From assembly GCA_033442325.1 (NCBI GenBank), contig JAWQFM010000016.1, positions 475,666-527,520 of the forward strand: 51,855 nt of DNA. Direction: 5' to 3'. A program made the position numbers and the translations under genes. Under the pieces are notes generated by a model. The model searched no databases. It saw nothing but the letters and a program-made list of their open reading frames with translations, and was not told where the DNA came from. The stretch's first letter is position 1. Each line of letters opens with the position of its first letter. Below, piece by piece: positions 3,278 through 41,924 of the stretch. This DNA comes from Salpingoeca rosetta. Lineage: Eukaryota > Protista > Choanoflagellata.

Positions 3278-3326
<49 letters not shown>

Positions 3327-3397
3327 CACGCACATACACACAGACAGATACAGACACACACACACGCACGCACACACATACACATACACAACACATA

Positions 3398-4527
3398 ATG
3401 GAGAGGGCAGGGGAGTTTGTGCATCAGCAAGTGCAGTTGCTGCACTCGCTGCCATCGTTTGAGGCGCTCCGGCCCAACATCGACACCATGCGCATGGATC
3501 TGGGAGAGGACGAGGATGACGCACAGCCCATGCCCTCCGAACAGTCCATCAAAAAGGCCATCAAGAAAGGTGCTGCGAACACGTGTATGTGTATGCGTGC
3601 ATGCTCAGTTTGTATGCGTGTGAGTGCGAGCCGTGTTGCAGCTCTTGTGACCGATCAACGGTGGTGTCACCTGCCCACCACTCACAACGCACTCTCTTGA
3701 CACCGCAACGCGTTGCAGCAAACGACATGGCACTGCAGAAGATGCGGAGCGTTCACGGGCATGTGGGGCGTCGGGAAGCCATCGATCAGCTCTCCGGGCT
3801 GATGCGGCCGCAAGGGGACGTTGTCGACGCCACAAACGCGTCAGACTGGCGACAGCTGCCGATGGAGTGGCCGAACATGGCCGCTGTCAGCTCACAGGGC
3901 GAGGGCGATGGCTCATCGACGCAACAGCAGGCCAGCAGCGGCGCGACAGCCGACAGCGTGCAGCAGCGCGACGAATACCGCCAGCTCCGCCTCAAGGCGC
4001 AACGGGAGTATGAGGAGGTGCAACGCGTGCGCGAGCAGGTTGCGCAGACGGAGCAGCTGCTGGAGGTGGTGGAAGCCGTCGGCAGCGATCTTGACACGGG
4101 CGCTGTCGATGCCTTGAAGACGGCCGTCAACGGAGCAGACAAGTCGAGTAAGTGCGCTTTGATTACACGTGTGTGTGCGTGCATGCATGTGCATGCGTGT
4201 GCGTGTGTGTGCGTGTGTGTGTGTATGTGTATGTGTATGTATGTGTGCACGTGTGTGTTTGTCCCCGTCTCATTCTCGTGCGTGCGGGTGTGCACCATCA
4301 ACCCCCCGCCCCTCCATATCATGCGATGCCTTTGCAGTACATGCGCTGCAGTCTGCGCTCGCTGATCCGGAGAAGCGAACGAAGATCGCGGCTCGCCTGC
4401 GCGCGAACGGCAATGGTGATGATGTCCATAGTGGTGGTCACAATGGCGACGGCAGCGGTGATGGGGTGTTGCCTGAGAAGCGGCCGAAAATGGACCCAGC
4501 AGCCGTCTTGCAGCAGCTGTTGCAATC

Positions 4528-17053: not shown

Positions 17054-17704
17054 ATGACCAATGTGAGGCAGGCTGTGTGGCGACAGTGCAGCCTGGTTTG
17101 CTTTGGTTCTTGCCGTTGCGTTGGTGCTGTGTGGTGCTGTGTGGTGCCGCGCTTTCCTGATGCTGTGTGCCACATTTCCTTGCGCTAATGCTGGCTTTTT
17201 CAACTTGATGCCCTCCCTGTGTTGCTGGTTCTCGCTCACACCCACCCACACCCACAGCCGCAGTCCTTGCAGTACATTGTACAGCAGATCAAGTCTGCCA
17301 GCAGTGCCAATCCACAGGTAGCACATCCTGCCGCTGTTTGTGTTGCTCGCGTGCTCTGATTGCATGGGCGCTGCCACAACAGCAGCACGCCGCACACTGC
17401 ACACATTGCACACTGCGCAGCGTACTGTACACACTACACACTGCGCACTGCGCACTGCGCATTCGAAGTTCTCACGTATGACCACGCTGCACTTGTGTGC
17501 GTGCGTGTGTGTGCAAGGCTGCCGAGCGCATTGTGACGCGCGTGAAGTATGTGACGAGTAAGCTCAGATTTGGGCAGCTGCAGCCGCTCGTGTCCGATCG
17601 AGACAGCGGCACCGACAACGACATCCTCGGCGCAATCTTGGAGGCTCTGGACAACTTGCAGCGCGCACACCGCGATCACAGCACGCTCCAACGGCTCATC
17701 GTTG

Positions 17705-17761
<57 letters not shown>

Positions 17762-19870
17762 GAATACATTCGTGAGGGGGGGGGGAGGGGAGAGGGTGCG
17801 TGCTTGTCAGGGAACATGTGCCCACAGATGCAGCTCTGTGTATTCGCTGTGTGTTTTGTTTGTGTGCATGCATGGTCGACAAGAGCCAACACAAACACAC
17901 ACACAGACACACACAGACACACACACACGGACACACGGATACAGACACACGGATACAGACACACGGACACAGACACACGGACACACTCACAGACTAACAA
18001 TGCTCACCCAATTACGTTCTTTCCTTCACCTCTCCTCTACTTTACGTCACGTTTCATCTTCTATGCCTCCTCCTGTGCTGTCGAGCAGATTCGGGTGGCT
18101 GTTGTCGTTGCGAGCGGCGATGCGTCTGCCATGCTCGTGTTGGCGTCGCAACTTCGCGGCTCACACCGCACCATCCCAGTCTCCGAGGTGATGAAGACGG
18201 AGGCGGGAGGATATAGAGTGTTAATGAACTCGTGGAGGTGGTGTGTGGATGTGCTTGAGCGCTAATCATGCTGCCGGCGCTTTATAAGTGCCTTTACCTC
18301 ACAATCCTGTTCATATTCACACACACACACACACGCACAAAACAAAAAAAAAAAAAAACCAACAAAACAAAAAAACAAAAACAAAAAAACACACACACAG
18401 CCTTTGGCGCAGCTGCACATGTCGACGGGTGTATGGATGCAGCACTCCACGTCCATTGTGCCGCGAGCACCGCCCCCACCGGACCTGACAGGAGCGGCAT
18501 CCTCCTCCGTCGACACGTGCTCCCCGCATTCGCCTGCCCCACTACAGCCTCGCGACATTGTCAACACGCTCCTCCCTGAGCGGGACTTTTCCGCCACCAG
18601 CATGCGCGTGCGTGATGCAGGCCGCCTGTCGCAACTGGGCATTGACCTGGACTCCGCGTGCGTGCTTGCAGGCAACGGCGCGCTCTTCTACCTCACAGCC
18701 TCGACGTTTGTGAAGCTCGTGCCGACGCCAACACCGGGCGAGCTCAGCATTGCCTTTATCAAGCCCTCCCCTCTCGGGTAAGCCGCTCTTGTGTGTGCTC
18801 GTTTGCGTGCCATGTGTGTGTGTGTGTATGCGCGTGCGTATGTGTGTGCTCTTGTCTGCGTGCCATGTGTTGCTTCCGCGACATTCCACAACACCGTCGC
18901 CATCACATGCCACTAACCCTCATCCTAACCCCATCTCATCGACAACGTCTCCACCGTCACTACTCCCATCCCCCTTCCAAGCGAGTCCGTCACGCCCGTG
19001 TCGGCCACCATTGCCGATGGCACCGTGTATGTCCTCGTGGCAGAGTCGACAAAGCTGCACGTCATTCCGCACGAGGGCCAGGCACCCGCAGCGCAATACG
19101 ACGTACGCGCATTGGTGGTTGCTGCTGCTGCTGCTGCACACGTGTTGGCCAAGGTGTGGCGGCCAGCCTGTGGCTGACGTTTCTCAGTGCAAATTCTTAC
19201 GCTTGCCCTCTTCCGTCCCTGTGTTGGCTGCAATCGCGCAGATTGTTGGTGCGGTGATTACGACAGACATGATCAAGGACAAGCAGTGCCATTTGTTCAC
19301 CCACGCCTTTCGCCCCCACATATGCTGGCGCTCCTCCGCACTCCCCATCGGTGCTGCGCTTGTTGTTGTCGTTGTCGTTGTCGTTGGCGTTGGCGTTGCT
19401 GGTGGTGGTGTTGGTGGTGGTGTTGGTGGTGGTTGCGCTTGCCGTGGATGGTGGCGATGGTGTTGTTCTGGTTTCGCGTGCTTACTGGTCAGGGCATGGC
19501 GCACGCCATGGTTGTTTGTTTGCCTGTGTGTAGTCCACGCCGTTATTGCTCCACCAGAAATATGCCACGCGTTCTTACGTATTGCCTTGCTGTGCGTTCA
19601 GTTTGGGAAACGAGCGCGCTGTGCCTCGATCCACACAGCAGCAATGGCTGCATCCATCTTGCGCGAGCAGACCACACCCGTTCGATCATGATGCAAGATC
19701 ATGTTGTCTTTGACAAACTGGAGCGCGTCTCGGATCCCGGCAGCCTGACGCGCTCCTGCACCCTCTGTACGACCCAGAGGGGGAGAGACAGCGAGAGGGA
19801 GAGAGACAAACAGACAAGCGCACGCACACACGTACACCGACACCGACACCGACACCGACACAGACACAGG

Positions 19871-19911
<41 letters not shown>

Positions 19912-20666
19912 CAACACACAACACACAAACACATACACACACACACACACAACGCTCACGTCCTCGCCCAATTCATCCCAAATGACCTGTAGGCCAACTG
20001 CTTGGGGACCGGTTTGATGCGTACATGACGTCGTCGTGGATGGACGCGGTCAAGTTTGGCTGCAACGTCTACATCAAGTCCCTTACCCTGAAGCTCGACC
20101 AGGACACAGCGCACGTATGTCATCCATTGCTCGCAACCTTTTCAGGGGAGGGCGGAACCAACTTGGGGGTGGCGTGTCAAACGCGAGTGAGAGCTGTTCC
20201 GCGGTTCAATGTGATGGTGTGTGATGTACCGCACATCAGCACACACCAGCTCACCCGTTCTCCTTGTCCCTTCCCCTGAAATGCACGTGCGTGTGCGTGC
20301 ATGTACGTGCGCGTGTGTGCCGTCATCAGGACGACTGGGAGCGGCTGCAGTTGAACTCGGGCACGCCTGTGTTTCGACTGACGGGATCATACATCTTCCT
20401 CGGTGCGCCCGTTTCACCATGACATGAAAGAGGGGCGAGGGGACCGTTGTGTTGGCCATCGTTGTGTTGACGCATAGGGGAAGTGATCGAGTGTGTGAGC
20501 GTGTGTGAGTGAGTGAGTGAGTGAATGAGTGAGCGAGTGAGTGAGTGTGTGTGTGTGTGAATGAGTGAGTGAATGAGTGAGTGAGTGAGTGAGTGAGTGA
20601 GTGAGTGAGTGCTTGTTGGACATTTTCTGGATGTTGAAATCAAACTCTTCCACTCATCGTTTGCAT

Positions 20667-20705
<39 letters not shown>

Positions 20706-20870
20706 CGCACGCACATTCATTCATTCATTATTTTTATGCAGCTGAGAACATCACCGACCGCCTTCTTGTCCAGCGTTCCAACTTTGACATGCTGACCATG
20801 GTGGAGGACAAAACTGTGCCACCAAAACTCTCCGTCCTCGCCTCATTTGGTGCGCCCGCACTCACACACA

Positions 20871-20908
<38 letters not shown>

Positions 20909-21577
20909 CTCTCTCTCTCTCTCTCTCGCGAGCAAGGCCTTTTTCCCTGTTCTGCATCCCATTGTCCTCCCAACCTTTTGCTCACCCCGCCCCAACCGAT
21001 TGTTCACGCCACCACCCTGTTTGAACATTCCCCTTTCGTCCCTGCTCCATTGCCCCCACCGTCACAGACGAGCCCGTGAAGTGTGTGCGGCTGTGGTCGG
21101 AGCACGAGTACCTCTTCCTGATGCAATCGAACGCCATCTTCATCTTCAACACCAAGGAAACCATCCAGCAGCGCCTTACAAACATCTCCCTCAAGCCAGT
21201 ACGTCACATGATTTTTCCACATTGCTCGCGCAGTCTCCCCTGCCCCCGTTTTGTGTCCTGAATTTCTTGACACGCGCACTTCATGTAATTTGCCCCACCT
21301 CACGCCCATTACATCCACTCAATGCTTCCGTCTCTGCGGTTCTCCGTTATTCGTTCTGCCTTTCATCGCCCCTCCCCCCCAAGGGCGAGGGCATTGTCGA
21401 TGTTGTTGTGTTTGCGAGCGCCGACAACCGGCGCCAGCTGCTGTTGCGCACAACAACGGGTGCACTTGTTGTCGTTGCCAACCCGCTGTTTGTGCTCGAT
21501 ATTGCCTCCTCGGCCTCGACAAAGTTCTCAAAGCGATACGGCGGCAAAGGTAGTACGATTCGTGACACACCATCTTC

Positions 21578-21612
<35 letters not shown>

Positions 21613-23322
21613 GTTCTCCGGACTCATGTTGGGGATTGCTTTGTTGACAGCCGAACCCTACACCCCGCCCCGCACACATACTCACTTACACATACTCACT
21701 TGCACATACACACTCGCTCATACTCTCACCCACATCTGCCCTCTGCCATTATCATGGCCTTCAGACCGGCTCACCGGGCGGCGGCGGACAATGCGCACTC
21801 GCTTAAACGGCGAGCGGAGGGCGTTGCGTCCAGCCCCGTCATCATTATCATCATCATCGACGCTACGATCGTCATCGTCCCCATCAATATCGCGGCAGCA
21901 GCAGCAGCAGCACCGCAACGAGGGTGTTGTTGGGCGAGTGCTGATGCTGCGCAGTGCAGCGCGCCGCAATGCGCGGGAAGTGCTGCGTCGGCTGGCGGGC
22001 AGGCCGTGCGAGGAGAGCGGCCTCGCTGCCATGCTGAAGCGCGCAAACGAGCAGCTCGAAGGCAAGGCAGCACAGGCGGCAGAGCACGGGCTGGCGTCAA
22101 GTGGACTGGCTGTCCTGAAGGAAGAAGACGGCGAAGAAGACGGCGAAGAAGCCAGTGCGAATGGTGTTGGAGAAGAAGAAGGAGAAGACGCGCAGCAAGG
22201 TGAAGCAAAGGCAGAGCGGGAAGAAGGCGGTGACAAGACGCCCGGCACCTCCACCGCCTCCACCACGACCACACGACACGAAGCAGAAAAGGGCACGCGT
22301 GGCGCTGCCACCGACGGCACACCCACAGGCAGCAGCAAGGCCGAAGGTGCTGGTGAAGGCAGCGAAGAACAGGGTCATGACGACAAGGAAGAGCGTGGTG
22401 CTGACACCGACAAGACAGCAACGGAGGTTGGAGCATCTTTGGCAACGGCAATGCGGAAGAAGAAGCGGCCTCGCGTCTCCTTTGTGCTGGATCACCTGCA
22501 GCCCAACGCAGACGCGCAGGAAAAGGACAAGAAGGAGGGCACGGGGACCGCACGGCTGTCAGCCAACAGCACGCTGGGACAGGCTAAGGACAGTAGCAAG
22601 AGGAGCAAGAAGAAGGAGAAGAAGAAGAAAAAGAAGAAAGAGAAGAAAGAGAAGAAAGAGAAGAAGAAGGGGACCGGAGATGCATTGGCGAAAAAGGCAA
22701 GTGGCGGCGTGGGCGACCTGAAGGCGCCATCTCCCGATGCCAACGGGCAGTCCGCGGGCGAGGGTGCTGATGGTGTGCTCGATGTTGACACGGCCATGAG
22801 TGGTGATGGAGACGACGTAGACGAGGGCAGCCTGCTGCGTGAGCTGTGGGCGCCGAGCATGGCGTCAATTGCCCGCCGCCACCCACACCGCCCGCCACGC
22901 TGGTCTCCAGAGCGCGATCGCGTGCCGCCCTCAGCGACGGTGGCGACACCAGCGGCCAAGGAACCTGAGGCCGGTGAGGGTGATGGTGTCGGCCAGGAGG
23001 GTGATGCTGACGTGGCTGGAAGCGATGCGGTTCACTCCACAGCAGCGACTGGTGAGGCAACAGGGCCAGCTGAGGCAACAGGGCCAGCTGAGGCAACAGC
23101 TGGCGAGGCGACAGTCGCAGCAGAGGGCGATGACCGCGTGGAGGTTGCGCTACCGCTTACAGTTACGGCTGTCATCGATGTTGACGTCTCTGCCTCGCAT
23201 ATCGCTATTGTCACCACGGACCACACGGTGTGTAGTGCGCTCTGCTGTCGTGCTGGGCTGCACTTTGTCTCCAACCGCGATGCGGCCATGCGTCCATGCA
23301 CTCATGTGCACCCTGCTGCCTT

Positions 23323-23402
<80 letters not shown>

Positions 23403-26400
23403 TCTGCTCCCCACATATCCAACACTTTGTCTTGTCTTTTTTTTTTTCTTACACCGCCACGTGCTGTTGCCTGCCGCCACCTCTGCCGGTTTGCAGGTGT
23501 ACGTTGCGTCAACGTCGAGTGGGCTGTCGTCCAAGCTGCCGTGGAAGCAGATCAAGGCTGAGGACAGCGAAACAGGCGCATTTGAAGCCCTCAGCTGCTT
23601 TCTCCACAATGAGCAGATTTCCATTGTTACTACAGACCGGCGCCTCCTCCAGCGCGCGGTACGCACGCTTGCTCCCGTTCTTACAGTTTTTTTGTGCACA
23701 TTTCCGTGTACACGTGTACACGTTCCTGCGCGTAGGCGTGTAGCTGTGTCATTTTGTGATGGTTGTCCCAGTGTCGTGTGCGTGTTGTGTTGTTGGGCCC
23801 CACCTTCTTTGGTCGCTCCTTGCCATGCGCCAACTCCCTCACACGTCCAATTCAACGTGTCATCTCACGTGCGTGAACAGAGCGACGCGTCGCTGGCGTC
23901 GCGACTGCATGAGCGGGTCAAGCACGTCATCCACGTGACGCAGACACAAGACAAGGACAGCCTCTACGTGTGCTGCACGCAAAAGCGCATGTGCCCATCG
24001 TTCCTCAGCTTTGTTACCTCCACCTGTGGGTACATGGTGATGGCGTGGCCCGAGCACGCTCTCACGGGCACGGCCGGCTCCACCAACACGGTCACAGATG
24101 TGCGGCCAATCGAGTATGGCCTGCGGCTCAGCCCGCGATCAGCGCAGCCCGCCGCGTTTCAGTGCGACTCGCGTCACGTGGTGGCGACGGACAAGTGCGT
24201 GTGGCAGCTGCAGTCCCCAACAGACATCAAGGTGTTGCGGACACTGCCGCTGTCCTCGTTGCTCACGACGGAGGACCCTCTCAAGACGCTCACCAGGGGG
24301 CTGTCCACCCCCGCCTCCACCCCCACCGCGCCGTTCGCTGCCACGGCAGCATCGTCGCGGCCACCACAGCCACCATCGTCATCGTCATCGTCATCGTCAT
24401 CTCCACCGGCCCCTGGCGACGTGTCGTCGTACCCTCGCAAGCAGTCGTCGCCGCCCCCAGCATCGTCAGCGACACGTGCTGATGCAACAGCAGCAACAGG
24501 AACGGCTTCAGCATCGTCGTCAACCACGCACGATGCGACCACGCCTGCCAGTGTTTCGTCGTCCGCTTCTGCCGTGTCTTCCTCAGGTGCGCCGCCATCA
24601 CTGCCGCGCGCCCTGGCTGACTTGGGCTCGCCGGCGCGCACGTCGTTCTGGTCAGCGATGACCGATGACAGTGCGTGCTGGCTGTCACGCCGCCAGGCGG
24701 ACACCGCCCTGGTGGTGGCCAGTGTTGGGGAGGAGGTGACAGAACACACCGTGTCGTGCGTGCTGTACTCGTCCCTGTGCCACCGGCTTCTGACAGACGT
24801 GCAGGACGCAGATGCCCGCGCTGCCCTTGACGCAGAGCTTCGCTTCTTGCTGTCGGGTAAAGCCAGCGCCAGCGCCGATGCCAAACACACGGCAATGGCG
24901 CGCACATGCGTGCAGCTGGCCCACCTGCCCGATACGGTCCCTTCCTGCCTCTCAAGCAGCGCCGAGCCCTGCGAAGAGCACGGAACCACCGCCACCACCA
25001 ACAGTGACGACGCGAACGGCAGCGAGAACGCGAGCCGCAACCGTCCTGCCGTGACGCCTGGCGACCCGGCCGCCAAGGGCGAGAGACACAACGTCCCCAA
25101 AGAGCACGACGAAGATGAGGAAGATGAGGAAGAAGAAGACGAGGAAGCAGTAGACGAGGAAGAGAAAACAAACGGTGGTTACGGCCACGAAGGTGATGCC
25201 AACAGCTGCGCTGCGCACGTGGGGCCGCGCCTCGGGCCCACAGCAAGGATGCGGCTGCGTGTGTCCACGCCTGTCAACACTGGGGTCTGCCTTCGCGGCG
25301 TTGCGTTGTGGATTGACATCCCCGACTCAGAGTCACTGTGGGTGCGGCCCGTCAAGGTCTGTGCCCGCGCTGTTATGGTGGCGGACGCCACATCACCATC
25401 TGTAACACCAACAGCAACACAAACAGCAGCATCGACAGAATCGGCGACAGAAACGGCAACCTCGTCGGGAACTTCAACGACAACAGCGGCACACGCTCCT
25501 CCGATGGCACCCTGCTACTACAGCTTCCGCCACATTGCCATGCGGCCGCTCGGCGCGAGCGCGTTTCTGCTGCTGTACGATGAAGCCAATTTCACGATTG
25601 GGCCGTTCCCTGCCGGGTTTTCGGGCCATGTCGACCTCACCTTCACAGTGGTTGGCATCGAGGGGGCTCGCGTTGCCCCTGCCGGTATTGCGCCCGCTAT
25701 CTCGCGTTTGCTGACGCCACTCGGTGGATTTGCAACAGCCGTACCGCCAACGTCGCCTTTGCTGTTGTCGTCGCCGTCGTCGTCGTCGTCGCCGGCACCA
25801 TCAGGCGCCCGTGGTGGTGATGGTGGTGATGGTGGTGATGGTGGTGTTGGTGATGACAGCGTTGATGGGGCCTCCACGGACACCGCTCCCAAGGACAGTT
25901 GTTGCTTGAAAAGCGACGGCAGCTGTGATGGCACCGTGGCGAGCACGCCCTCTGCTGTGATGGCCATTGTGTCAGTGCCCACGGAAGAGCTGATGGTGCT
26001 GCGTCGGTGGTCGCGACCGCACTCGTTTCAGCTGTCCGTCTCGCCCGCCTTTTTCCGCACCCTGCTGCTGCAGTGGGCAGAGCTGCTGAGGAGCGTGCCT
26101 GACATGGTGGCGCTGGCCAAGGCCGCTGCCGAGGCGAAATCGGACACCAGCAACGGCTGCGCCAGCGAGGGCGACAGCATCAATGAGAAGGAGCACAGCG
26201 CCACTGACAAAGGTGGTGTTCATGCTCGCAGTGCAAAGTACTGGGAGCAGATGTTCGCCTTCAAGTGCACGGCTGCGCTCCTGGCGCGCATGCTGCTGTG
26301 TGGGCCCTCGGCAATCCAGTCCTGGCACTCTGAAGATCTGCGCGCTGTGCTGGACGCCACCAACAGCATCAAGTCAGCTGTCGTGTCGCTCACCTCCACG

Positions 26401-29400
26401 GAGCCAGCCCTGGCCAGGTTCTGCTTCCAAGCAACGCAGTGGCTCGTGCCACGCTGGCTGCACGTTGGCAGCACGTACAGCGCGTTTGCGCTTGCTCGCC
26501 TGCTGCGCACACCGCCCGGCGCGCCCCTTGATACGTGGCTCCGCCTCGTGCTTGGCAACGACATCCACGCCGCACAGCCAGGGACGCTGTTGTGGCACAT
26601 CATCTCGACGCTAGTGTCCCAGCAGCAACACCAGCTGCACGGGCAGCAGCAGCGGGTGCCACACCTCTTGGAAGACACCACCAAACGTTCAAGCACCAGC
26701 GCACGCGCCAGTAGCCGTACTGGCACCACGGCCCCCACAGCGCCGGCATCCTCACCAACCGTGCTCGTGCGGGAGCACCTGGAGCTGTCCGTGGCACGGC
26801 AGCTGAAGCAAGGGCCCGTGCACAAGTTCATGTTTTCGTGCGCGCAGACTGTGGAGGAGGTGTTTCTGACGCTTCGGCTGACCGAGCAGCCACCCAACAC
26901 GGCCACAATGTCTGTCACTGTGCACTACATGAGCGCGCCCGTGCTTGCGCTGGCTGATGAGCGCGTGGATGTGCAGGCGCTGCTTGATGTCAAGTACGCC
27001 GCGCCATCCCTCGTTCAGCCCGTCATGGTGGGCACACTGTGCTCCTCGTCGCCGTCAGCGGGGCCGTCTTCGTCATCGTCATCATCGCCAGACGCGTTCA
27101 AGGACCCTGGAGCGGCCCTGTACGATTACGAGCTCGACGTGACGGGTGCCGTTCGCGCAGGGGTGAGCGCCTGCAGACAGGCCGTTGTACAGGTGCTGGA
27201 GCGTGTTGGCCACGAGGAAGCGGAGGGCACGCGCCTTGTGCAGGCCTTGGACTCACTGCCGATGATGGTGCTCGTCACGACAGAGTCCATCACCCCGCTC
27301 CAGCTGAGCATGGCTGGCGGCACAGCGGCATACCAGGTGCGAAAGGTGTCGCCGCTGCTGTCACAGCAGCTGCTGGCCACCCCTGATGCAGCCCTGGCGA
27401 CGTACACGGACCTGGATGCTGCCGATGCTGCCCGCGATGCGCAGGAGCTGCTGCAGTCATGGACGGTTGGCGGTGCTGTGACGCGCGTGCTGCAGCTGGG
27501 CGTGCGGCCAGAGCTGCAGACCCACGAGCGCTTCTTCCTGTTTGCGGAGGTTGCGGCGCTGCTGGATACCGCTGGGGACGGCTGGACGGCGCATGTGGCG
27601 CTGCAGGCCGCACAGGCGGTCGTGGCCACGTGGGGCCGCCTCCTCTCCGACGAGTACGACGAGTGCCTCGCTGTTGTGAAGCGCGCGGTGCTTGTGCTGC
27701 TGCAGTCGCCGGCGTCCAACACGGATGCACTTGCGCTGCTCGGCTCCCACGGCGCAGCGGCAACGGAGGACACGTTTATGGTATCTTCTGCGTGCGACGA
27801 GGAGGAGAAGAGCCCACCCAATGTGCTGCTCGTGCGCGGGCACGACCGCCACGGCCTCATGCCCACCACCCCTCTTGGCATGCTGCCGTTGGCCAGAGCA
27901 GAGGCGCCTTCCCCTGCCTTCTCCCGCCTGCACAGCACATCCGAGGACACGCCTGCCGACACAACTGCAGCCGACAAGTGCGACGCACGTGAAGGTGATG
28001 GAGGCGACGCCGCCCGCCTTGACACCAGCGTTCATCCCCTGCAGCAAGGGGGAACGGGTGGTGCGGATGGCGATGGCGATGGCGGTGACACGGTGCTCAC
28101 ATCCGCCGCTGCCGAGTCGTTCCGTGCAGGCATGCGCCACCGCGAGGCCGTCGCCCTGAACGTTGCTGCCTGGGCGGGGAAAAGTGTCCCGTTTACGCGC
28201 AAGCAGGGCGCGGACGCGTCGCTGGAGCGCGTGCTGGCAGCGCTTGGTGTTCGCTTCAACACGCAGGACATGACCGGTGTTGCACGCACGTTTGAACTCA
28301 TGCATCCGAGCCAGGCTGCGGAGGGCAGTGGCAGCAGTGGCGGCAGCAGTGATGACGCAGATGAAGCAGCCAGGCTTAAAGCGACCAAGCAGCTGCTGTG
28401 CGAGGCCATCAGCAGCTCGTCATACATCACCCACGCGTCTTCGGGTACCACCAGCCCAGGCGCGCTCAAACTGAAGGCCACACCAAACCACAACCCTTCG
28501 AACAAGCAGACACATACGCAGGCGCAGGCACAGACGCAGGCGCAGGTGCAGACACATACGCAGGCGCAGGCGCAGGCACAGGCGCAGGCACAGGAGTGGC
28601 TTGGGCCCGTGCTTGATCAGACGGCGCCGTTCAGCCCGCTGTCGCGTATTGACGCGAATCTTGTCCGCAGCCACATGTTCAACTTCATGTCCAAGGCATC
28701 GCTGCAGCAGGGCGGGCCTGGGTTTGGCTGGCGATCCAGCGGCGGGCGCGAGGTGCTGCTAACACCGCCGGCGCTGATGCTCGGCCACTCGCACGCACAC
28801 GCAGCGGTTGTGCCACGCACCCTCCTCACGCGATGGACAGGGGATGGCGGCGACGTAACCGCTTTTGCTGGCGACAGCTCCAAGGCCGACAGCGGCCGTG
28901 GCGGAGCCAGCAGTGATGCAGGCAAGACTGTCAGGGCGTCGTGGTGGGCGGGTGTTTTGCCCACAGGTCGCCGCGACAAGAAGAAGGACGAGGCCACAGG
29001 CGCAGACAAGGACAAGGAGAAGGACAAGAAGAACAAGGACAGCTCGGGCAAGAAGGCGTCGGCACCAACGGAAGTGGCCAAGCACCACCAGCGGCGCGTG
29101 CTGTGGTCGAGCGCATTTGGCGCAAACGTGGTGGACGCACTGGAGCTGCTCAAGCGCAGCGACGCCGTGCGGCGAATGGTCCACCCCAACGTGGACGACG
29201 ACGATGAGGACGGTGAGGAGGGCGATGATGGGATGAAGGGGCGCGGTGCTGCAAAGGGCGCAAAGAAGGACAAGGTGGCCAAAGAAGAGGAACAAGAAGC
29301 GGGTGAGGAGGCGGTCCAGGATCAGCAAAAGGATTCTGACGCTGGCGGAGACCGCAGCAAGGCCAAAGCCAAGGTTCGCGCGGACCCCGGATCTGCTCTG

Positions 29401-32400
29401 GCGCCGGGAGCCAGTGCTTCCTCTGCATCGCCCTTCATTGCACCGGGCCGTCTCCGCCCACGTGTCGTGTCGGCACTGCTGCCCTGCAACGAGCAGGAGC
29501 ACGCGCAGTGGAGCCCCGAGCGACAGGCGCGCCTCGCCTTCCTCCTGGATTTCGTGTGTGCAGCCGCTGGAACGCGCGGGCATGCGTGTGCACACGCAGC
29601 GGGCCTGCTGGGCGAAGTGCCCGTGGCGCACGTGCTTCTGAGCGACTTGGTTGGGCTCAAAGCATCGTTGACACACTCACGGCCGGCATCTCGATTGTCG
29701 TCAGCAGCCGGCAACGCTGGTGATGATGGTGGTGATGCTGCTGCTGGCGGTGACGATGTCGAAGGAGATGGTGGTGATACTGGCGATGTGAGGGTGCCCG
29801 CACCAACCATATCGCGCTTTGTGAAGGTTGCCACTGCTCACAGCCGCGTATTCCAAGATATGCACGGAACGTCGGGCGTCACTGCAGGATCCCATGACAC
29901 CGCAAATAGCGACAACAAGGCCGCAAGCACGGATGCTGCCAAGCGCACTTGGGCAGCGATTGCTAGCACTGCTGGTGCCACAGACACGGCCACATGTGGT
30001 GACAGCAAGCGCACGGATGGCACAGACACCACGAGCGACCACACTGGGGACCACGCTGATGAACATGATGATGAGCTGAAGAAGCAATATGCACCGGAGC
30101 ACGTCGACGTGATGCTGACAGCCACCGTTCACCGCACGCGCTTGACCCACGTGTTCTCGTTCTTTGTGGAGCTGTTTGGTCACAGCAAGTCCGAAGCGGC
30201 AACACGCGGGGACGCGACTACCACTGTGGGCGAGCGAAGCAACGATGATTCCACGGACAGCGCCGAGGATGGTGGTCGCGATCAGGGGCGCGCGGTGCTT
30301 GCGGCACCGGCCAACGCCGTGTCCATCGCAAAGGAGATGCCCGTGTCCGTGCGCATGTACTGTGGCCCGGAAGACACCAGTGGTAGTCAGGGTTCAAGCA
30401 AGCATTCACAGTCTGCACGCGGCACGACTGACCCTGACAAAGAGCAGCGGCAACAGCAGCAGCAGCTGAAGCAGTCGGAGGACGTGGAGGAGGAGCAGGA
30501 GGATGACGCATCGAGTGCCACTGCTTCTCCCACCACCAGCACGCCAGCAGCCATGGATGTTGGTGCGGACGATGCTGACGGTGGTGGTGACGCCAGAATC
30601 GTGTCAAGCATGCAGGATGTGGGCTATTCGTGGCCCCCGGCCAAGGGCGTCTTGAGCTTGGAGGAGCAGCGGGCCATGGTGTACATGGCGTCGCCGCGCG
30701 TGAGTGTTGTCAACACGGCCGAGACGCATCGCCGGCGCTATCAGATCAAGCTGGAGAACATTCGCAAGGGCAGGTATGTCTTGGCGGTGACAACGAGTGC
30801 GCGTGCGCAGCCAATCTGGATCCACCTGACGGTGCAGAACGAAGCAGAGACTGCCGGCGAGTCACGCACGAGCGCCGCGCACTCTGTCGCGTCGCAGCTG
30901 TCGGCTGGGCCAAGGGTGTCGACGCCTGGTGCGGAAGACGTGTTTGCGGCTGCAAACGAAGGCAGCGCGCCAGCCAACGCCCTTCAACACCAGCAGGGCG
31001 TGGAGACGGTGTCCGAGTTCCGGTTTGCCATGGGCAATGACGTGGTCATGTGGGGCACGCCCACACGCGTGTCGCTGCCGGTGCGCACGATCAAGATACA
31101 CGCCGGCGCGGGGCGGGACACGATTGTGCTCGGCAAGATGACGGGCGATGAGATACAGGACGCGTACCTGCGGGCGGAGATGGAGGAGGACGATGCGCGG
31201 CTTCGCATGCTGGAGACGAAGGACCTGTGGAAGGGCGGCGGCGAGGAGGGCGAGGATGCTGCAGAAGGTGGGCGCTTGCTGGATCGTTACAAGGAGAAGC
31301 GTGAGTTCTTTGAGAGACGGCGAGCGCGCTTGCGGTTGGGCGGCGCTGATAAGGCCAAGGCCAGAGCAAAGGGTAAAGACAAAGACAAGGACAAGAAAGA
31401 GGGGGAAGACGAGCTGGACGCTGATCTTGTCATGGCTGGCATTGAGGATGTGCACTCGCGCGAGGCGGCGTTTGCTGACCGCTACAACGAACGCATGAAC
31501 AGCGGCGATGATTCGAGCGACGACGGTCGGGAGATTACGCTGGAACAGCAGGCGCAGCGCCTCGTCGGCCGCCTCCGCACCGGGCCCATGTTCATCCTGA
31601 GCGGCCACGTGGTTGTTGTTGACGGCGATGACAAGGATGACGATGATGACGCCGACGGCGTGGATGCAAAGGGCGGCAAGGAGCACGGCAATGACAGTGC
31701 TGCTCGCTACAAGCGGCGGCGTTGTGTTCCTCTTCGCCGGTGCTGGGCGGCCCTGCATCCCACGACGGTTGCCTCTGTGGCATCGGAGGAATACAGGCAC
31801 CTGCCGGGATGGGTGAACCTTGGCGACCTGGCCGTCCAGGCTGAGGAGGGGGAGGAGCACGAGGTGGAAGGGGAGGAAGCCAACGAAGAGAATAAGGGCA
31901 AGGGAGGCCCTGACAAGGCCGAAGATGAGGGCAAGAAGAAGGACGACGCAAAGGGCGAGGGCAGCGACGCGCCGGAAGCAAAGGACAAGCAGAAGAAGGA
32001 TGGCGATGATAACGCGGAGAACCAAGGCGAGGGCAAGGACGAGAAACAGGACGAGAAACAGGACAAGGACAAGGACAAGGGCAAAGAAGAGAACGCGTCG
32101 GCACAGGATGACAAGGATGCCAAGGGCGAGAAGGAGGGCAAGGCGGATGAGCAGGCAAAGGGCCAGGAAGAGAAAGGCGGTGTTGGTAAAGGGACCGATG
32201 CAAACGAGACAAGCCCTCGTGCTGGTGCGGTGCGTAGCGCGACAACAGCCATCACGACGCTGTCTGCGCTGCCTGGTCGTGATTTGCTGATGGTGTGGCA
32301 GAACCACCACTTCCGCGGGAGGCATGCGGTGATGGTGATGCGCCCGGCAGACGCTGACGACGACAAGGGCGATGGCCAGGGTGACAAGGACAAGAAGGAC

Positions 32401-35400
32401 AACGACGGAGAGAAAAAGAAAGACGAGGCTGCAGGCGCCAAGGATGACAAGAAGAAGGTGGAAGGTGAAGAACACGCGGTGGCTGACAATGGCGATGGCG
32501 GCGAGGATAAGCCGAAGCAGGAGGAGCTGAAGGAGGGCGATGACAAGCAGGAGGGCGAGAAGAAAAAAGAGGAGGAAGAAGAAGGCGATGACAAGGACAA
32601 GGCCGGTGAGAAGGACAAGGCAAGCGAGGGCGAAACGCCGACGCCAGAAGAAGTGCGGGTGATGATTGAGCAAGCGGCACAAGAGCAGGAGACAAAAACC
32701 GAGGCAACAAGCGAGGGCCATTCCCTGTCGTCTTTGCAGTGTCAGCGTGCACTCCTGGCTGCTTCCCTCTGGCACAGCCGCGCATTCCATGACATGCCAC
32801 CTGATGACATCACCCCTGACACATTCCTCACCATGGCGGTGCGTAGTTGCGTGTGTGTGTTGTGTGTGTGTGTGGTTGTGAAACTGTGCTTGAGACTCTG
32901 TTTTGAAGTTGTGTGAGAGAAACACTGGCCGCGCCTGCTTCATGCTCGACGGTGACGCATGCCTCACAGTCGGCCGCTCACGCTGCTACTGCTTGTAATA
33001 CCTCCCATAACTAACAGAAGCGCCACAACGCCGACGCGCTCCTGGCCAACTTCTCGACTCACCAGCCGGAATACGTTGGTGCGTAAATTCAAAATGCGTC
33101 TGTGCGTGCGTGCGTGCGTGCGTGTGCGTGCGTGCGTGTGTGTGTGTGTGTGTGTGCGTGTGTGTTGACAAAGGGGGTTGCCTGCGTGTCTTTCACAGTG
33201 ACTGTAGCCTTGACAGACAACCTTCCCTCGCACGCGCAAACGCGCACAAACACGCACACTCACACTCACACCCAAACCCACACCCACCCACCACATACAA
33301 ACGTGCATGATTCGGATAGTGGTGCATGCTGAGCTTGGACGCCTGGGCAGCGTGTGCCCGCGTCAGGATGTGACAGCCCTTGTCCAGCACATGTACGGGC
33401 AGCCATCCCTCTCCTTTCAGTGGCTGCAGCCGTGGCCGGCGTGGGCCACGCTCCTCGTCGTGTTTGCCCCATCCCCCTTTGGGCTGCGCAGCGTCGTGTT
33501 CGGGCCGCCAGCCCTGGCCGACCTGCGAGTTGTTGCGCTGTCGTCCTCTGACGCCGCGCGCGAGTGGACGGCCGATGCGGTCGCTGATGCGGCGGTGCCC
33601 GTCACGGAGTACTTTGACGCACGCGAGCAGGCCGTCATTGCAGAGGCAGCGAAGCGCACGCACTTTCAGTTTACGCCGTCGCTTGCCGGTGTCAACGCTG
33701 GCAGCGGCCGTGATGGCAGTTCTGGCGATGGTGACGTTGAAGATGACACCGCCGTTGCTGCGTACACGCGGTCAGCCCTGTCTCGCCTCGCTGCCTGCAT
33801 GGACGTTGACCAGCTGGGTCCATGCCTCAAGGTACCGCTGATGTTGAGGAGGAGGGGCGGGTTTGTTTGTGTGTGTGTGTGTGTGTGTGTGCGTGTGTCT
33901 GTGCAGGCTCGCGCACATGCGTATCTGTGTTTGTGTATGTTTGTGTATGTGTGTGTATGTGTTTGCACGCGCTGATTTGCAGCTTCAACTGACGTACGCT
34001 CTGTTCATGTCCACACATGTTGCGTCAACCACTCACACACACACAAACACACACACACACACACACAAATACACACACACACGCACACACACAAATACAC
34101 ACACAAATACACACACTCACACACACAAATACACACACACACACAAAGGTTGATGGCGCCGTGTACGAGCACTTGGCAGCAAGCGAGGCTGTCAGTGCCG
34201 GTGTGAGTGCGAGCGATGCTCACACGCAAGTGATTGCCTGGACAGCGTTCCTCCTCTCCCTGTCGCCCCTGTCAACGGCCGGTGTCTCACAGGACGAAGA
34301 CGCAGACACCCACAAGGTGCAGTCATGCTGCTGCTTGATTGTGTGCATGTGTATATGTGTACGCGTGCATAATTGTACATATGTGCAGAGATGCGTGCTT
34401 GTGTGCAGTTGTAGTTTGGTGCTCTTGTGGTTTGTGTGCATGTGTATGCGCGATTCATTATATTGTTTGTTGTGACATTGACAACCCAACCTCTTGTTCA
34501 CTTGTTCGTCGTGCTTTGTGAACTGTACGTGTGTGCGATGTATGTGCGATGCGTGAGCAGCTTGTGTGCAGCGGTTTCCGCCATCAGCATGACATATTCC
34601 TGGAGTTGGGCCACCATCTCCACGACGCCCAGCGGCACTTTGACTTCCTGCAGGTGTGTGTGTGTGTGTGTAAGTGCTGCGGAGAGTGTGCGTTGAGGAG
34701 GAAAACAGATTTGACCTGCGGTATGTATGGTATTCTTGGTCACACGGCACACGTTCACTTGCGCTTGTTCTTGCCCCACTTTGTGTGTGTGTGTGTGTGC
34801 GTACATTGGCGCATCTGCAGATGTGCCGGAAAGTAAGCGCGTTTATGCAGCGCAAGGAAACGACGCTTGAATCGGCCGTCCTGTACGTTTCAATCGCGCG
34901 TTTGCATCGTGTGTGATTTCTGCAGTGTACTATTCGTTACACCTGTGTGTTGGAAAGCTGTGGCATGTGTGGCATGTCTAGGGTTGTTCTCACACTCACG
35001 TGTCGCGTGCGAATACGTGTGTGCGGTGCGTATTGTTTTGGGCAGGCTGTTGTGCCGCCTTGTTGAGATGCGCGAGTACGACGTTGAGCAGCTGGTGCGC
35101 CCGCGACCACCCCTCGTGTCCACATCGCGCCTCGCTTCTGCAACGTGCGTGCCCCGTGTTCGTGTTTGTGCATGCGTCTGCTGGGTTCATCCACGTGTAT
35201 GCTGCGTGTGCATGCTGCGTACATGTTGCGGTGCCTGTCGAATCGCCACCCGCTGCTTGTCTTGCTCTGTACGTGTCCTCACAGCGTTGGCTGGCATGCG
35301 CGCTGGACTGCAGATGGGTGGAGACGAGCTGCCCTCTTGTCTTTGGCCGAGACTTTGCGGCCTGTCTTCGCGTCATGTCAGACGCCGTGCTCAAGCGCAT

Positions 35401-38211
35401 CGCCAAGGAAAAGTGCGCGATGTTCTGATTGTGCTGTTCTCCTATGCGCTTTTCTTGCCCGTTGGGGCTGGTGCTGTCCTTGCGTGTCTTCATTGACCAC
35501 GGCGCGTGTGGCTCGCCACTCACGCAGCCCACACACATACACACACACTCACTAACTCACACATACACACATACACACACACTCTCTCTCCGTCTCTACT
35601 GTAGGAGCCCGAGTGTGATGTTGGCGGTGAGCGGTGCGCTGCGGGCGTCGGTGATGAGTGTCGCTGTGCAATCGCACGAGCTGCCGCTGTGGCTGGCAGA
35701 GGCCAGCCGCCTTCGCAAGATTGTCGTTGTCGTGCAGCGGCGCGCCTCTGAGCTGTCCAACTCGGCGAACGTGCCCAAGGTACCGACGGAGCTGACGAAG
35801 GATGTGCTGTTCGTCCACGCTGCGCAGGACACCAAAGCCGACAACTACTCCATTACCAACGGCTGGATCACGTATGTCATGTGCTTTTACCTTTACCCCT
35901 TGCTGTGTTGCTTGCTTGTTTGTGCGTTTCCGTTCCTTGCTCCCCGTGTGGAACAATGTGCATGCATACATGTTCTGTTTATGCGTGTGTGCGTGTGTGT
36001 GTGTGTGTCTGCGAGTTTTCAGCCTGATGTGCTTGCCTATTGTCGCCGGTGCCTGACAATTCAAACAAACACAAACACGCAAACAAACGCACGCACGCAA
36101 ACACACACGCAAACAAACGCACACACACCGTTCTGACTCGCTTGCCATTGTCTTACCACTGGTTCTTGTGTGTTTGCTGCAGGAACACGCGCGAGCGGCC
36201 ATCTGTGTCCATTGAAATTCCAGTCACGGCGCACATGCGCGGTATCGTGCTGCCCGCCAACGTCAAGTGCACCGTCATCGCCACACAGGTGATGGGATGT
36301 GATGGGACGTGATGGGACGTGACAGAGGGCGTGATGGGGATGCGCAGCAAGTAGCATGCTGTTGGCTGCGACTGGAGCACTCACACTTGGTGCTCTCGTT
36401 GCAATCGTGGGTGTTGCTCTTCTTGTTGTTCTTCTCATGTGTCCGCCTCACTGAATCGTGAATCGCATCACCGCCGCCACGTCCACAGCATGCGGACGGC
36501 ACCGTTGGCTCTGCGTCAGTTCGGCTGTCTGATATGGAGCGGGATGCAGTGGTCTCATACCTCAAGGATGTCAAATCCGAGGAAGAGGTGGAAAGCTGCA
36601 CCCGCTACCACCTCAGATACCCGCACATTACCATGGACGTGTTGCTGTTTGATGCTGCAATTGCCCAGGTGCGCTGTGTGTACGTGTGTGTAGGGATGTG
36701 CGTGTGTCTGAGTGTGAGTGTGTGCGTCGATGTGTGCAGGAATGTGCGTCGATGTGTGTAGGGATGTGTGTGTGTGTGTGTGTGCGTCGATGTGTGCAGG
36801 AATGTGCGTCGATGTGTGCGTGTGAGTGCGTGTGAGTGAATGTGAGTACGTGCACAATGGGCTGTAATCTCTCTGTGGTGGGTTGAGTTCGTGTTTACAC
36901 GTGCATCCCCGAACGTGCCACCCATCTCTTCTCTTTGCGCACACCTTTGCTCAACTGCACAGGTGTCGAAGTTCCTGCTGCTGAGCATTCACTGGCCGAG
37001 CGATGCCAAGGCGCGTGTGCCCGCGTATCAACTTGTGTATGAGTCGCGCTTTGGCGTTAACCTCCGCAGCGAGGTGGAGAGTCTGCGCCTCGTCCTCATG
37101 GACAGCCTTAAGCGGCTACAGACGCAGGTTGTGGAGGCACTCAAGTCTGTCAAGGACAGCAGCGCACACCCGGCAATCCTGGACACGTCAATGTTGTGGA
37201 CATCAATTGTGCAGGCGTTCTCGTTCATCGAGCAGCACATGCCCAGCGTGAGTGCTTCGTGTACCTGTACGCGTGTGTGTGTGTGTGTGTGTGTGTGCGT
37301 GTGCGTGTGCGTGTGCGTGTGCGTTTGGTTGTCGATTGCAGATGTGCTTCTGACATGTTTGTGCGCGTCTTCGGTGAGCTTCTTTGATCTTTCTCTGGGC
37401 ACTAATGCACGGGATGCTGTGTGTGTTCTCTGTTGTACCCAACTTTCACAGCGCACGCAAGAGGTCTACAAGATGTGGCAGACGCAAGTCCTGGACCCTC
37501 TCTTCAGGATGCACCCATCCACAATGCCAAAGGTCTGTGTCTGTGTGTCTGTGTGTCTGTGTGTCTGTGCATGCGTATCGGTTTCCGTGTATCTGTGTGT
37601 GTGTATGTGTGTGTGTGTGTGTGTTTGTGTGTTCGCGCGCGCATGTGTGTGTACGTGTATTTGCGTGTCTGGGTGTACGTACACTTTCTTCCCGGACTCT
37701 CGCGTCCCATCCCCTCACGTGTGAATGGCAACGGCAGACCTGCCCTGTTGTGAAGCTGGCCCACTCCATTTTCGCCACGACCAACGCTGTGCTCGAGGCC
37801 ATGTCCTGGCCAGGCGAAGGTGCGACTGTTGCCGCTGTCTTGCATGCACCATTGTGTTGTTGTGATGGTTTCACGGTTTGCACACGCAGTGCTACGACGC
37901 ATCCACGCATCCACGCATCCATACATGTACGCTTTGCTTTTACTAGCCTGGCTCACCCACACACCCACGTGATGGCTTGCGTGCAATTGGCAGACATCAT
38001 GGTGATGAAGCTGCTACTCGCTGTTGAATTCGTCGGAATGGTCAGTGACGAGTGCAACAAATATGTTCATTTACCAGCTTCACCGCGTGTTCGATTGTGT
38101 CCCTGAACCACGCCACCCGCCTGGCGCCACTGTCATGCCCACGTCCACATACCCGTCTTCCATTTTTTCGCAAACTCATTTCACGTCACATCAACCCCAA
38201 TACCCCCCATT

Positions 38212-38299
<88 letters not shown>

Positions 38300-40773
38300 G
38301 CACACACGCACACGCACGCACACGCACACACACGTTCTTTCTCGTCACCAGTGTCACGCCCCAGGTGTTGTAGCGACTGCGCGAGAAGGGCGTCGGCTCC
38401 TGGAGCACCTCATCTCCCAAGTGTACCGCCAGCAGCAGCGTGCACTGCTCACGCCAGAGTCAGCAGCAACGTCGTCCATGAACGCGTCCGTCGCAGACGC
38501 CGGCGTCGGTGTTGCGTTTGACTTTGGCATGACCGCCGGTGTTGGCATGGGGGATCCTGGCCTCGGCGCCGGCGTTGACCTTGCCGTGGGTGTTGGTGGC
38601 GACATGGGGGCACCTGGCGATGCTGGTGCTGGTGTTGTGGACAACGGCAGTGGCGTGTCTTCTGCCGGCGTTGATGCGCAGGCGAGCAGCAGAGGCGAAA
38701 CAGCCGTGGAGACAACGGTGACTGTCAACGAAGACGACACGCTTGTTCGCATCGCCATGAGCATCAACGGTAAGTGTGTGTGCGCGCGCGTATGTGTCGG
38801 TGTGTGTGTTTGTGCCTGCATCATCAAACGTTGCCTGTGTATGTGTGTGCGTGTGTTTTTTTTTTTGTACGTTGCATTTTGTTGTCTCTGGTGAAGCCAA
38901 GGCACACAATCCCTCGGTGGCATTTTTTTTTTTCGTTGTGGTTGAGCTGACGAGCGAGTGCGTGCTGTCCATTGCACAGATCATGCCTGCAAGACAGTTG
39001 TGCTGAAGACACTGCCTGTTGACGATGACGAGGAGAACGAGGACAAGGAGGAGAAAGAGAAGGAAAAGGACAAGGATGACGACAAACAGAAGCTCTGGGA
39101 GGAACTCAAGGCCATGGTACGTCTGGCAGTCGTGCGTGTGTGTGCGTGTGACTGCATGTGTGCGTACGTACATGTGCGTGTGTACACGTACGCGTGTGCG
39201 CGTGCGCTGGCGTGTGCACTCACGTGTACTCACTCTCGCATGCCTTGCCCGATTGCGCATGCCACGTGCACGCCCATGCACGCTCATCAGTGCAAGAAAC
39301 GCAAAGCGCCGCGTCGTGTGAAAGCGGACAAGGACCGGTCTGTCTCGTATTACCGCGACATGTTCCTCTTCCTCTTTGATGTCGAAACAAGGCTCAACCC
39401 AGGCAACTGTCTCAAGGTGTGTGATGGCGGACACCCGTCATATACCGTTGGCAATCACGCATTGCTCTTGCGTTGTGGTCTTGCGTGTGTTGGCGTGTAC
39501 GCTTGACTTTCATGGCACCGCTGTTGCATTTACATGAAGTGAACGGCGGCCGTCACTCACCCCATGTTGGTTGCGGGTTCTGATTGTGTGATCGCAGGCG
39601 TTTGTGATGCATCAGTTCAAGAAGACACACGAGCGCCTGCAGCAGCACTTGACCAGCGAATCCTTCATGGAGTCGTGGGAGACGTGAGTGCTGCCGGTGT
39701 TGAAAACTGTGTTGTGGTTGGGTGGTGTGTGCTATGTGTCCTGTGTGTCCTGTGTGGTGTGTGAACTGTATGTGTTGTGCGGAAGTGTGCGGCTTTCACG
39801 CACGAGCTCCACGCCCATGCTGCTCTGCGTCTTACACACTGGTGTGTTTGTGGCTGTGTTGTTGGTGTTTACACCGCAGGGTGCTGGCCCAGCTGTCTGC
39901 TGCCGCCGTTGCTCTTACACCGAAGTTGTGCAAGGAAGTGGAGCGCTACTGCAACCAAAGCCTGGTACGCCACAGAACTGCTCGTGTTGTTCCTGTTGCT
40001 GCTCACTTGGGTGTTGTTTGCTGTTGTTGTTGTGCATACGTTGCTCACAGCATCTTGCTGCTGCTGCTGCATCATGTGGTGTAGACGGCGCCTCCAACGT
40101 GCGACAATCACGGTGATGACACAATGGCGGTCGTGCATTGCGAGGAGTGCGATTTGGACCTCTGCCGCGAGTGCGACGCATTCTGGCATCTGCCCGCCAA
40201 CAAGCGCTCGCACAAGCGCATTCACGTAAGCTGCGATTCTGTGATTGGCCTACGCGTGTGTGTGTGCGTGCGTGTGTGTGCGTGTGTGTATGTGTGCGTG
40301 TGTGTATGTGTGCGTGTGTATGTGTGTGTGTGTGTGCGTGTGCGTGCGTGTGTGTGCATGTGTGCGTGGGTGTGTGTGGGTGTGTGTGTGGGTGTGTGTG
40401 TGGGTGAGACGTTCACAAATTTGTACGTGCGTGTGCTTGTTCACTTTTGTGTGCGTTGCACCTGGCCGCCTTCTGATATCCGCATCACCACTTGCAAATC
40501 ACAAACTAGATGAAACCGCCACCATCCCGCCTGAATTTGGCGTTTGACGAGGAAGCCGGCATTGTGCACATTGTGTGCGACAACCTGAAGATTGACGTGG
40601 ACATGGCCCGGGTGGAGGCACACCTGTCCTGGGAAACGTACGACGAAGCAAGTCGCACGCGCACACCTGCAGCTGTGCCTGCGGCTGACAGCGGCAAGAA
40701 GAGCGACAACAATGGTGATAATGGAGATGGCGACGGTGACGCTGATTTGCTGCAGTTCTTCAATCGCGCATAA
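17054..40773 (+). CDS. Giant (~5,000 aa, ~37 exons) protein with C-terminal B-box-type zinc finger; divergent MYCBP2/Highwire/RPM-1 (PHR)-like
   Basis: A continuous in-phase GT-AG exon chain can be traced from ATG 17054 (MTN|[12 protein letters not shown]) to TAA 40773, including an 8,958-nt exon at 23881-32838. Exon 40085-40225 encodes [47 protein letters not shown]1-like segments lie near 21383-21549 and 23170-23520. A few joins (e.g. near 38040-38350) are ambiguous. Confidence 0.7.
36718..36820 (+). repeat. Intronic direct repeat GTGTGCGTCGATGTGTGCAGGAATGTGCGTCGATGTGTG, two copies 60 nt apart
   Basis: Visible near 36720 and 36780. Confidence 0.8.
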
Positions 40774-41395: not shown

Positions 41396-41879
41396 TCACT
41401 TCTTGGCCGCCCCCGACTTTAGCTTCGAAGATGCCGCTGGCTTCTTGCCAGTCACCCCTTTCTTGGTGGTAGAAGACGAGGCAGCGCGAGAAGGCGTGGT
41501 CGTGGTTGTCTTCGTGGTTGTTTTCTGCGCACGTGCACGCGTTGCTGCAAAGCCGGGCGAGGAGCCGGACCGTCGTGCCGGTCTTGGGCGAGGTGACACG
41601 CCGTCCTCTGTCAACAACTGCGGCGATGACTTGCTGTCGATGGAAGCAACCGTGCTGCGCCCACTTGCACTCGCACTAGCATGTCCACTTGCGCTCGCGC
41701 TTGTTGCGAGCGGACTTCGTGATGCTGTTGCGTTTGATTTCGCTCGTCTCCGAGCAGCTGCCGAGGGCGAGGGCGAGGGCGATGGCGACGCAACACATGA
41801 CGACGCCAATGACGAGGATGGTGTGGTCGATGAGCGGCGGCCACGTGGTGTTACAGTGGTCGTTGCTGACTTTGGAGAT

Positions 41880-41924
<45 letters not shown>

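Follow-up and report, generated by a model that had tools for sequence, protein, structure and literature searches.

Does a giant gene of the choanoflagellate Salpingoeca rosetta, whose product as read carries a B-box zinc finger and then stops, belong to the PHR ligases (MYCBP2/PAM, Highwire, RPM-1)? The development of axons and synapses is controlled in large part by PHR ligases, and a B-box appears in every domain diagram of them. The gene lies in a 51.8-kb stretch of the 55.4-Mb S. rosetta genome (G000:C16:475666-527520), which was analysed as a whole and is called the window below, and the original prediction had read it either as a highly diverged, ligase-less PHR-family scaffold or as half of a split PHR system. 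The predicted zinc finger was assigned here to the MYCBP2/PHR-type B-boxes, with a kinship well above chance. Judged from its sequence, the gene itself is neither the S. rosetta PHR ligase nor a piece of one, and the reading as a ligase-less or split MYCBP2 fails. We consider it moderately probable that this is a single-copy, lineage-restricted gene with a mostly low-complexity or disordered product, which has acquired a functional-looking PHR-clade B-box at its C-terminal end.

Kinship of the B-box exon

The zinc finger and the end of the reading frame were located in two small exons, and the peptide, splice sites and stop had been placed correctly in the original prediction (slashes mark exon boundaries):

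40085-40225, plus strand: B-box exon, 47 codons; acceptor TAG/ACG, donor CAC/GTAAGC; Pfam zf-B_box
40510-40773, plus strand: terminal exon, 87 codons plus TAA (40771-40773); acceptor CTAG/

Both junctions between the two exons sit at codon boundaries, and the terminal exon is phase-matched and has coding potential. The ligand pattern read from the B-box exon is C-x2-H-x9-C-x2-C-x4-C-x2-C-x4-H-x7-H with all eight zinc ligands present, and the eight are retained though about half of all residues differ from the B-box of S. rosetta MYCBP2, a gene found on contig C1. No match was obtained by Pfam on the untrimmed open reading frame (ORF) carrying the B-box, and PF00643 (zf-B_box) rose above its cut-off (25.9 bits vs 24.1 for the gathering score) after a translated GT-repeat intron had been trimmed. 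At 40085-40510 of the window this intron stays on the ORF as a CVCV... tail and hides the B-box from Pfam; small domains in the S. rosetta genome can escape family scans if a translated CA/GT-repeat intron stays on the exon.

The kinship with MYCBP2 was supported by several comparisons. The window B-box and that of S. rosetta MYCBP2 were aligned by BLASTP over 44 aa at 48% identity (43.9 bits), and a six-frame search of the genome with the window B-box returned the MYCBP2 locus as the best non-self match (38.5 bits), followed by a B-box on contig C9 (30.9 bits). When every plus-strand ORF of the C1 region was compared with the window by tblastn, the B-box exon was the sole match (45.4 bits, E 7e-7), and the B-box was likewise the only match shared by the window and the C1 locus in BLASTP/tblastn searches between the two. 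A profile of 19 PHR B-boxes scored the window exon at 39.6 bits (E 2e-11 among the 998 six-frame ORFs of the window) and the C9 B-box, used as a control, at 19.8 bits. The window and MYCBP2 B-boxes were also reciprocal best Smith-Waterman partners among the six Pfam B-boxes of the genome (120 vs 96). In a small maximum-likelihood tree the window B-box was placed on the PHR side, with 100/100 against the C9 and C7 B-boxes, among the four rows with a four-residue C-x2-C-x4-C spacing (S. rosetta MYCBP2 and its three nearest hits), and its highest identity (58%) was to another non-animal PHR B-box. The MYCBP2-like zinc finger of the original prediction was borne out by the BLASTP and profile scores, the complete ligand set and the tree.

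The spacing between the second and third Cys pairs is four residues in the non-animal PHR B-boxes (S. rosetta MYCBP2 and P0001-P0003) and three in the animal ones. The whole S. rosetta genome apparently holds only about six B-boxes, and the second-nearest to that of the window belongs to a small gene:

G000:C9:689833-689961 (loci L010/L011), minus strand: C9 B-box, Pfam-grade, 30.6 bits

This B-box (Smith-Waterman score 96) shares with the window exon the CEEC....CREC core and a K/R-rich H-x7-H tail, whereas it begins with C-x2-C instead of C-x2-H, is without the NH-DD-T head and falls on the other side of the tree. The ORFs adjoining it read like a SAM domain.

The PHR profiles were built from 18 orthologue fragments (sea urchin, insects and three non-animal sequences, the latter with 53-65% identity to the C1 gene). 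The B-box profile combined the 18 fragments with the C1 sequence and spans 89 positions, covering the B-box plus the segment after it; the other profiles have 1213, 785 and 337 positions, about 2,300 between the three. The C1 sequence was included in the 785-position and B-box profiles and excluded from the 1213- and 337-position profiles. The 998 six-frame ORFs served as the window target of all profile searches, and window and paralogue searches were run exon by exon.

MYCBP2 on contig C1 and the search for PHR features in the window

The PHR domain (PF08005) was searched for in the whole genome and yielded one locus, with none in the window:

G000:C1 ~3.043-3.062 Mb: S. rosetta MYCBP2, sole PF08005 locus (142 bits), 60 kb around it examined

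In this gene RCC1 repeats (Pfam 1e-14 to 1e-21) and the PHR domain were found in one exon, and filamin and APC10/DOC matches were also obtained. A 1,748-codon exon carries DOC, the B-box (LFCDNHDDGETHATHACAECEMNLCTECERVLHLPRRKRDHTRTR) and RING, and one of the further exons reads YAYFPCHKCGKAYFGG... The RING and tandem-cysteine exons matched the human MYCBP2 RCR crystal structure 5O6C with E 3.5e-26 and 1.1e-28, respectively. The last big exon (L006:459-5702, corresponding to G000:C1:3055459-3060702) begins with a ZZ-like CMDGCDYDLCLGC motif. These matches showed that S. rosetta has a complete, canonical MYCBP2, with its own B-box immediately before the RING and tandem-cysteine module.

With MYCBP2 complete on C1, its RING and tandem-cysteine part is no separate partner of the window gene, and the split PHR system was rejected. 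A RING and tandem-cysteine part encoded elsewhere had been raised as one of two possibilities; the module is indeed present on C1, but as part of the full MYCBP2 and not as a stand-alone protein. As this choanoflagellate already has a complete MYCBP2, the window gene is evidence of neither a ligase-less ancestor nor a split system, and the picture of PHR evolution is unchanged.

The window was examined for the other PHR features. Pfam reported no family in the 3,206-aa frame, in 20 untrimmed plus-strand ORFs, in 10 sub-segments that took in the beta-rich islands (E<=10) or in 10 trimmed exons, the B-box exon excepted once trimmed, and a run on eight minus-strand ORFs was empty. RCC1, RCC1_2 and WD40_RLD gave no match at E<=1 in whole or trimmed plus-strand exons, and filamin and APC10/DOC gave no Pfam match in the window. 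The orthologue profiles separated the two loci as follows:

Profile far upstream of the B-box, 1213 positions: window best E 0.16; C1 gene 152 bits
Profile of the 800 residues before the B-box, 785 positions: window best E 0.26; C1 gene 768 bits
RING and tandem-cysteine profile, 337 positions: window none at E<=1; C1 gene 180 and 95 bits

The protein had been predicted to stop without its ligase module, and this was upheld: by tblastn and the 337-position profile, RING-H2 and tandem-cysteine sequences were matched in none of the six frames of the window. A downstream RING exon was rejected on the same grounds. The B-box aside, no MYCBP2 match was obtained by Pfam or by profiles that readily detect the C1 gene. 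The claim of a highly diverged PHR-family scaffold fails on this absence of any match elsewhere, although the B-box itself is more than a generic one.

A beta stretch similar to that of PHR ligases had also been proposed after the B-box. In all 19 of the 19 PHR sequences the B-box is directly followed by a highly conserved V.L.EGCGR.KL....AD...LKA..EF segment. No BLAST alignment was found between the window terminal exon and the post-B-box region of S. rosetta MYCBP2, and on the profile of PHR B-box plus beta stretch the terminal exon scored about 0 bits, a score equalled by 17 of 429 shuffles. The one point of agreement with PHR proteins, judged by eye, is the distance to a short L-x-[LV]-x-[FL]-[DN]-E-x-x-G motif, which reads L-x-L-x-F-D-E-E-x-G in the terminal exon. 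The exon consists of a short beta-looking stretch and then an acidic/Gly-Asn-Asp tail, and gave no Pfam domain, no PDB sequence match and no paralogue in the genome. The proposed similarity was left unsupported by these comparisons.

Segments of the long frame were also modelled by single-sequence AlphaFold, with a confidence (predicted local distance difference test, pLDDT) of 42 for residues 655-1290 and 37 for residues 2270-2660. The secondary structure in these low-pLDDT models places beta-rich islands at 669-808, 1197-1233 and 2490-2660. Foldseek comparison with the PDB gave no match at E<=0.001; the models were too poor to judge a fold.

Exons, linkage and relatives of the giant gene

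The remaining exons of the gene and the last exon of its convergent neighbour were assigned as follows:

~17518-17706, 18413-18778, 18929-19174, 19986-20276 and 21363-21581, plus strand: tentative upstream exons, from a coding-potential scan and translations; boundaries approximate
21788-23227, plus strand, 5' end approximate: Lys/Glu-rich upstream exon; donor ACG/GTGTGT, joins the central exon in phase 0
23497-32838, plus strand: central exon, 3,114 codons; acceptor TTGCAG/GTG, donor GCG/GTGCGT, phase 0 to 0
33421-33831, plus strand: exon after the central exon, 137 codons; acceptor TTTCAG/TGG, phase 0
~34149-34316, 35605-35871, 36489-36668, 36963-37247, 38433-38775 and 38998-39116, plus strand: tentative small exons, from coding potential, with CA/GT-repeat introns between them
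41396-42826, minus strand: last exon of the convergent neighbour gene, GAS2 (GAR) domain, Pfam GAS2 E 1.1e-10

The central exon is certain as an open frame and is a genuine coding exon: it holds 3,114 stop-free codons within a stop-free frame of 23236-32913, has phase-0 junctions on both sides and shows a periodicity of guanine-plus-cytosine (GC) content by codon position (0.665/0.517/0.711). In-frame introns may lie inside it, for example at ~23.7-24.1 kb where the coding potential falls. Its product is rich in Ala, Ser, Gly and Asp and mostly of low complexity; it contains long tracts of acidic residues or rich in Lys, and a few islands that are beta-rich or helical. A strand-turn-strand motif is read across the junction 23227>23497, and the short strand-rich motifs in the exons of 17518-21581 could be propeller blades. 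The ATG at 17054 was without support as a start codon.

An exon-chaining script, working under a permissive model, found a frame-consistent path from the giant exon through the B-box exon to the TAA at 40771, in a region whose introns are packed with CA/GT repeats. It is fairly probable, and well short of certain, that one mRNA carries both the giant exon and that of the B-box: the chain needs several tiny exons, notably at 34.3-35.6 kb. The gene would probably comprise about 4,600 codons in more than 15 exons. Downstream, the gap from the TAA to the end of the GAS2-domain ORF (41396) was measured as 622 nt, in agreement with the convergent GAS2-like gene predicted about 620 nt past the stop.

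Relatives of the gene were sought in several collections. Word-index protein searches with residues 80-3200 and 905-1560 of the giant exon returned no match, self included, and a full HMMER search with residues 655-1520 against 1.84 billion representative proteins returned 0 matches, again self included. For the same residues the ESM Atlas gave no usable match, with a recognition score below that of known families, and when metagenomes were scanned for the B-box exon, 118 pattern matches were obtained, of which 0 were confirmed. The central exon is single-copy within the genome. As judged by these searches the window gene is likely an orphan; the lack of a self-hit may mean that the gene is unannotated or split in public models, or that the libraries are without it.

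At the other end of the window, a 300-nt direct repeat of 100% identity (80-379 and 3325-3624) flanks a 790-N gap (N run 1011-1800) and looks like an assembly duplication. The low GC in the first 2 kb of the window is due to this gap.

Origin and possible role of the B-box

Three other explanations were weighed against the acquisition of a B-box by a lineage-restricted gene. The whole gene might be an ancient, extremely diverged MYCBP2 paralogue with a cryptic propeller, PHR/DOC sandwiches and a B-box, from which the RING and tandem-cysteine module was lost. Its estimated size is similar to that of MYCBP2, the upstream exons carry repeated strand-turn-strand motifs, the AlphaFold models contain the beta-rich islands listed above, and the B-box has a C-terminal position as in PHR proteins. 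All sequence tests were negative, however, whether for RCC1, PHR, filamin, DOC, the 800 residues before the B-box or the region after it, and the same profiles scored the C1 gene at 95-768 bits despite the distance between animals and choanoflagellates. Since the post-B-box stretch that is so conserved in PHR proteins is also unrecognisable in the window, and the models are too poor to reveal any fold, we regard such a paralogue as unlikely. A MYCBP2 duplication might also have left the B-box exon as a dead fragment in non-coding DNA, which is highly improbable. The surroundings are indeed rich in GT/CA repeats and the exon is known from genomic sequence alone, but at only 48% overall identity it keeps all eight zinc ligands as well as the N-H, D-D, T-x-A, L-C and H-L positions. 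Its frame is open, its acceptor is clean, its donor is GTAAGC and both cuts fall exactly between codons; the terminal exon after it is in matching phase and has coding potential.

The third explanation bears on the size of the B-box protein and not on the B-box itself. Two genes might be present, the giant frame ending at ~34.3 kb and a separate gene of ~500-600 codons (~35.6-40.8 kb) carrying the B-box. There are 1.3 kb without coding potential at 34316-35605, across which the chain took four tiny exons, and the exon at 35605 is out of phase with the preceding one and contains, close to its 5' end, in-frame ATGs that are possible start codons of a gene. On the other hand, after 33831 or 34316 an in-frame stop is reached only by reading into GT-repeat sequence, comparable gaps of ~1-1.2 kb occur at 37248-38432 and 39117-40084, and the chain that scores best when begun at the giant exon runs to the TAA at 40771, though the permissive model lends this weak support. 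A division into two genes is therefore possible and, in our view, rather doubtful.

For the acquisition of a PHR-clade B-box by an otherwise lineage-restricted gene, the simplest history would be a duplication of the B-box-coding segment of an ancestral choanoflagellate MYCBP2. At the 3' end of another gene, either unrelated or diverged beyond recognition, the duplicate would then have formed a small exon of its own, followed by an unrelated 87-residue tail. In the absence of RING, tandem-cysteine, HECT or U-box domains, the product would have no E3 ligase activity of its own. Because the B-box ligands are under selection, the module probably still adopts its zinc-bound fold and offers a surface for contacts. 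On a long flexible scaffold it could mediate protein-protein contacts, with zinc as its stabiliser. TRIM B-boxes self-associate; the window B-box might share the ligand of the MYCBP2 B-box, or pair with the MYCBP2 B-box itself. We consider it improbable that the giant product of the window gene serves MYCBP2 as a non-catalytic partner or decoy, acting through the shared PHR-type B-box.

Several observations weigh against this account. The missing self-hit of the giant exon makes the coverage of S. rosetta in the libraries uncertain, so the lack of relatives is a weaker result than it appears. A fold-level likeness to RCC1-like, PHR or DOC domains could be present beneath the low-confidence models, and the upstream exons carry blade-like strand motifs. 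The 34.3-35.6 kb interval was bridged only via implausibly small exons. With regard to the proposed binding role, no paper giving the PHR/MYCBP2 B-box a function was found in the literature, and nothing was found on MYCBP2 in choanoflagellates or on a structure covering its B-box. The FSN-1/FBXO45 (FBD1) and RAE-1 (RBD) binding sites of PHR ligases are short, experimentally defined motifs (PMC4806438), and the B-box is simply drawn in domain schemes (PMC2627918; PMC4806438).

If the acquisition is true, a second choanoflagellate protein with only the PHR-type B-box and no ligase module would offer a handle on what the B-box binds, and would be a clean case of domain shuffling out of a giant ligase gene. 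If the partner or decoy reading is true, the gene would show the module in a natural "B-box-only" setting, in the unicellular organisms most closely related to animals, and could reveal the role of this highly conserved part of PHR proteins. The significance is modest in either case: a new context for a known domain, and a domain-shuffling curiosity.

Compared with the PHR ligases, the window gene has the same B-box ligand pattern and the CDNH..DD.T.A, LC.ECD, HL and R.H.R positions, and as read it also places the B-box near the C-terminus of a very large protein. It differs from them in that no RCC1-like, PHR, filamin, DOC, RING-H2 or tandem-cysteine domain was detected, and in that the segment which PHR ligases keep after the B-box is unrecognisable. 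The exon layout is different as well, the B-box forming a separate small exon in the window gene and lying inside the 1,748-codon exon in S. rosetta MYCBP2. Compared with generic B-boxes (PF00643, TRIM B-box2 and the ANCHR-like PF22586), the window exon passes the PF00643 gathering score, and its language-model neighbours are B-box clusters. In a PDB sequence search the B-box exon matched only TRIM2/TRIM3 B-box2 structures, and these weakly (E 0.05). TRIM proteins differ from the window protein, which is without a RING, a coiled coil and a C-terminal TRIM domain, and the window B-box scores ~40-44 bits against the PHR B-boxes, far above the 17 bits reached with solved TRIM B-boxes.

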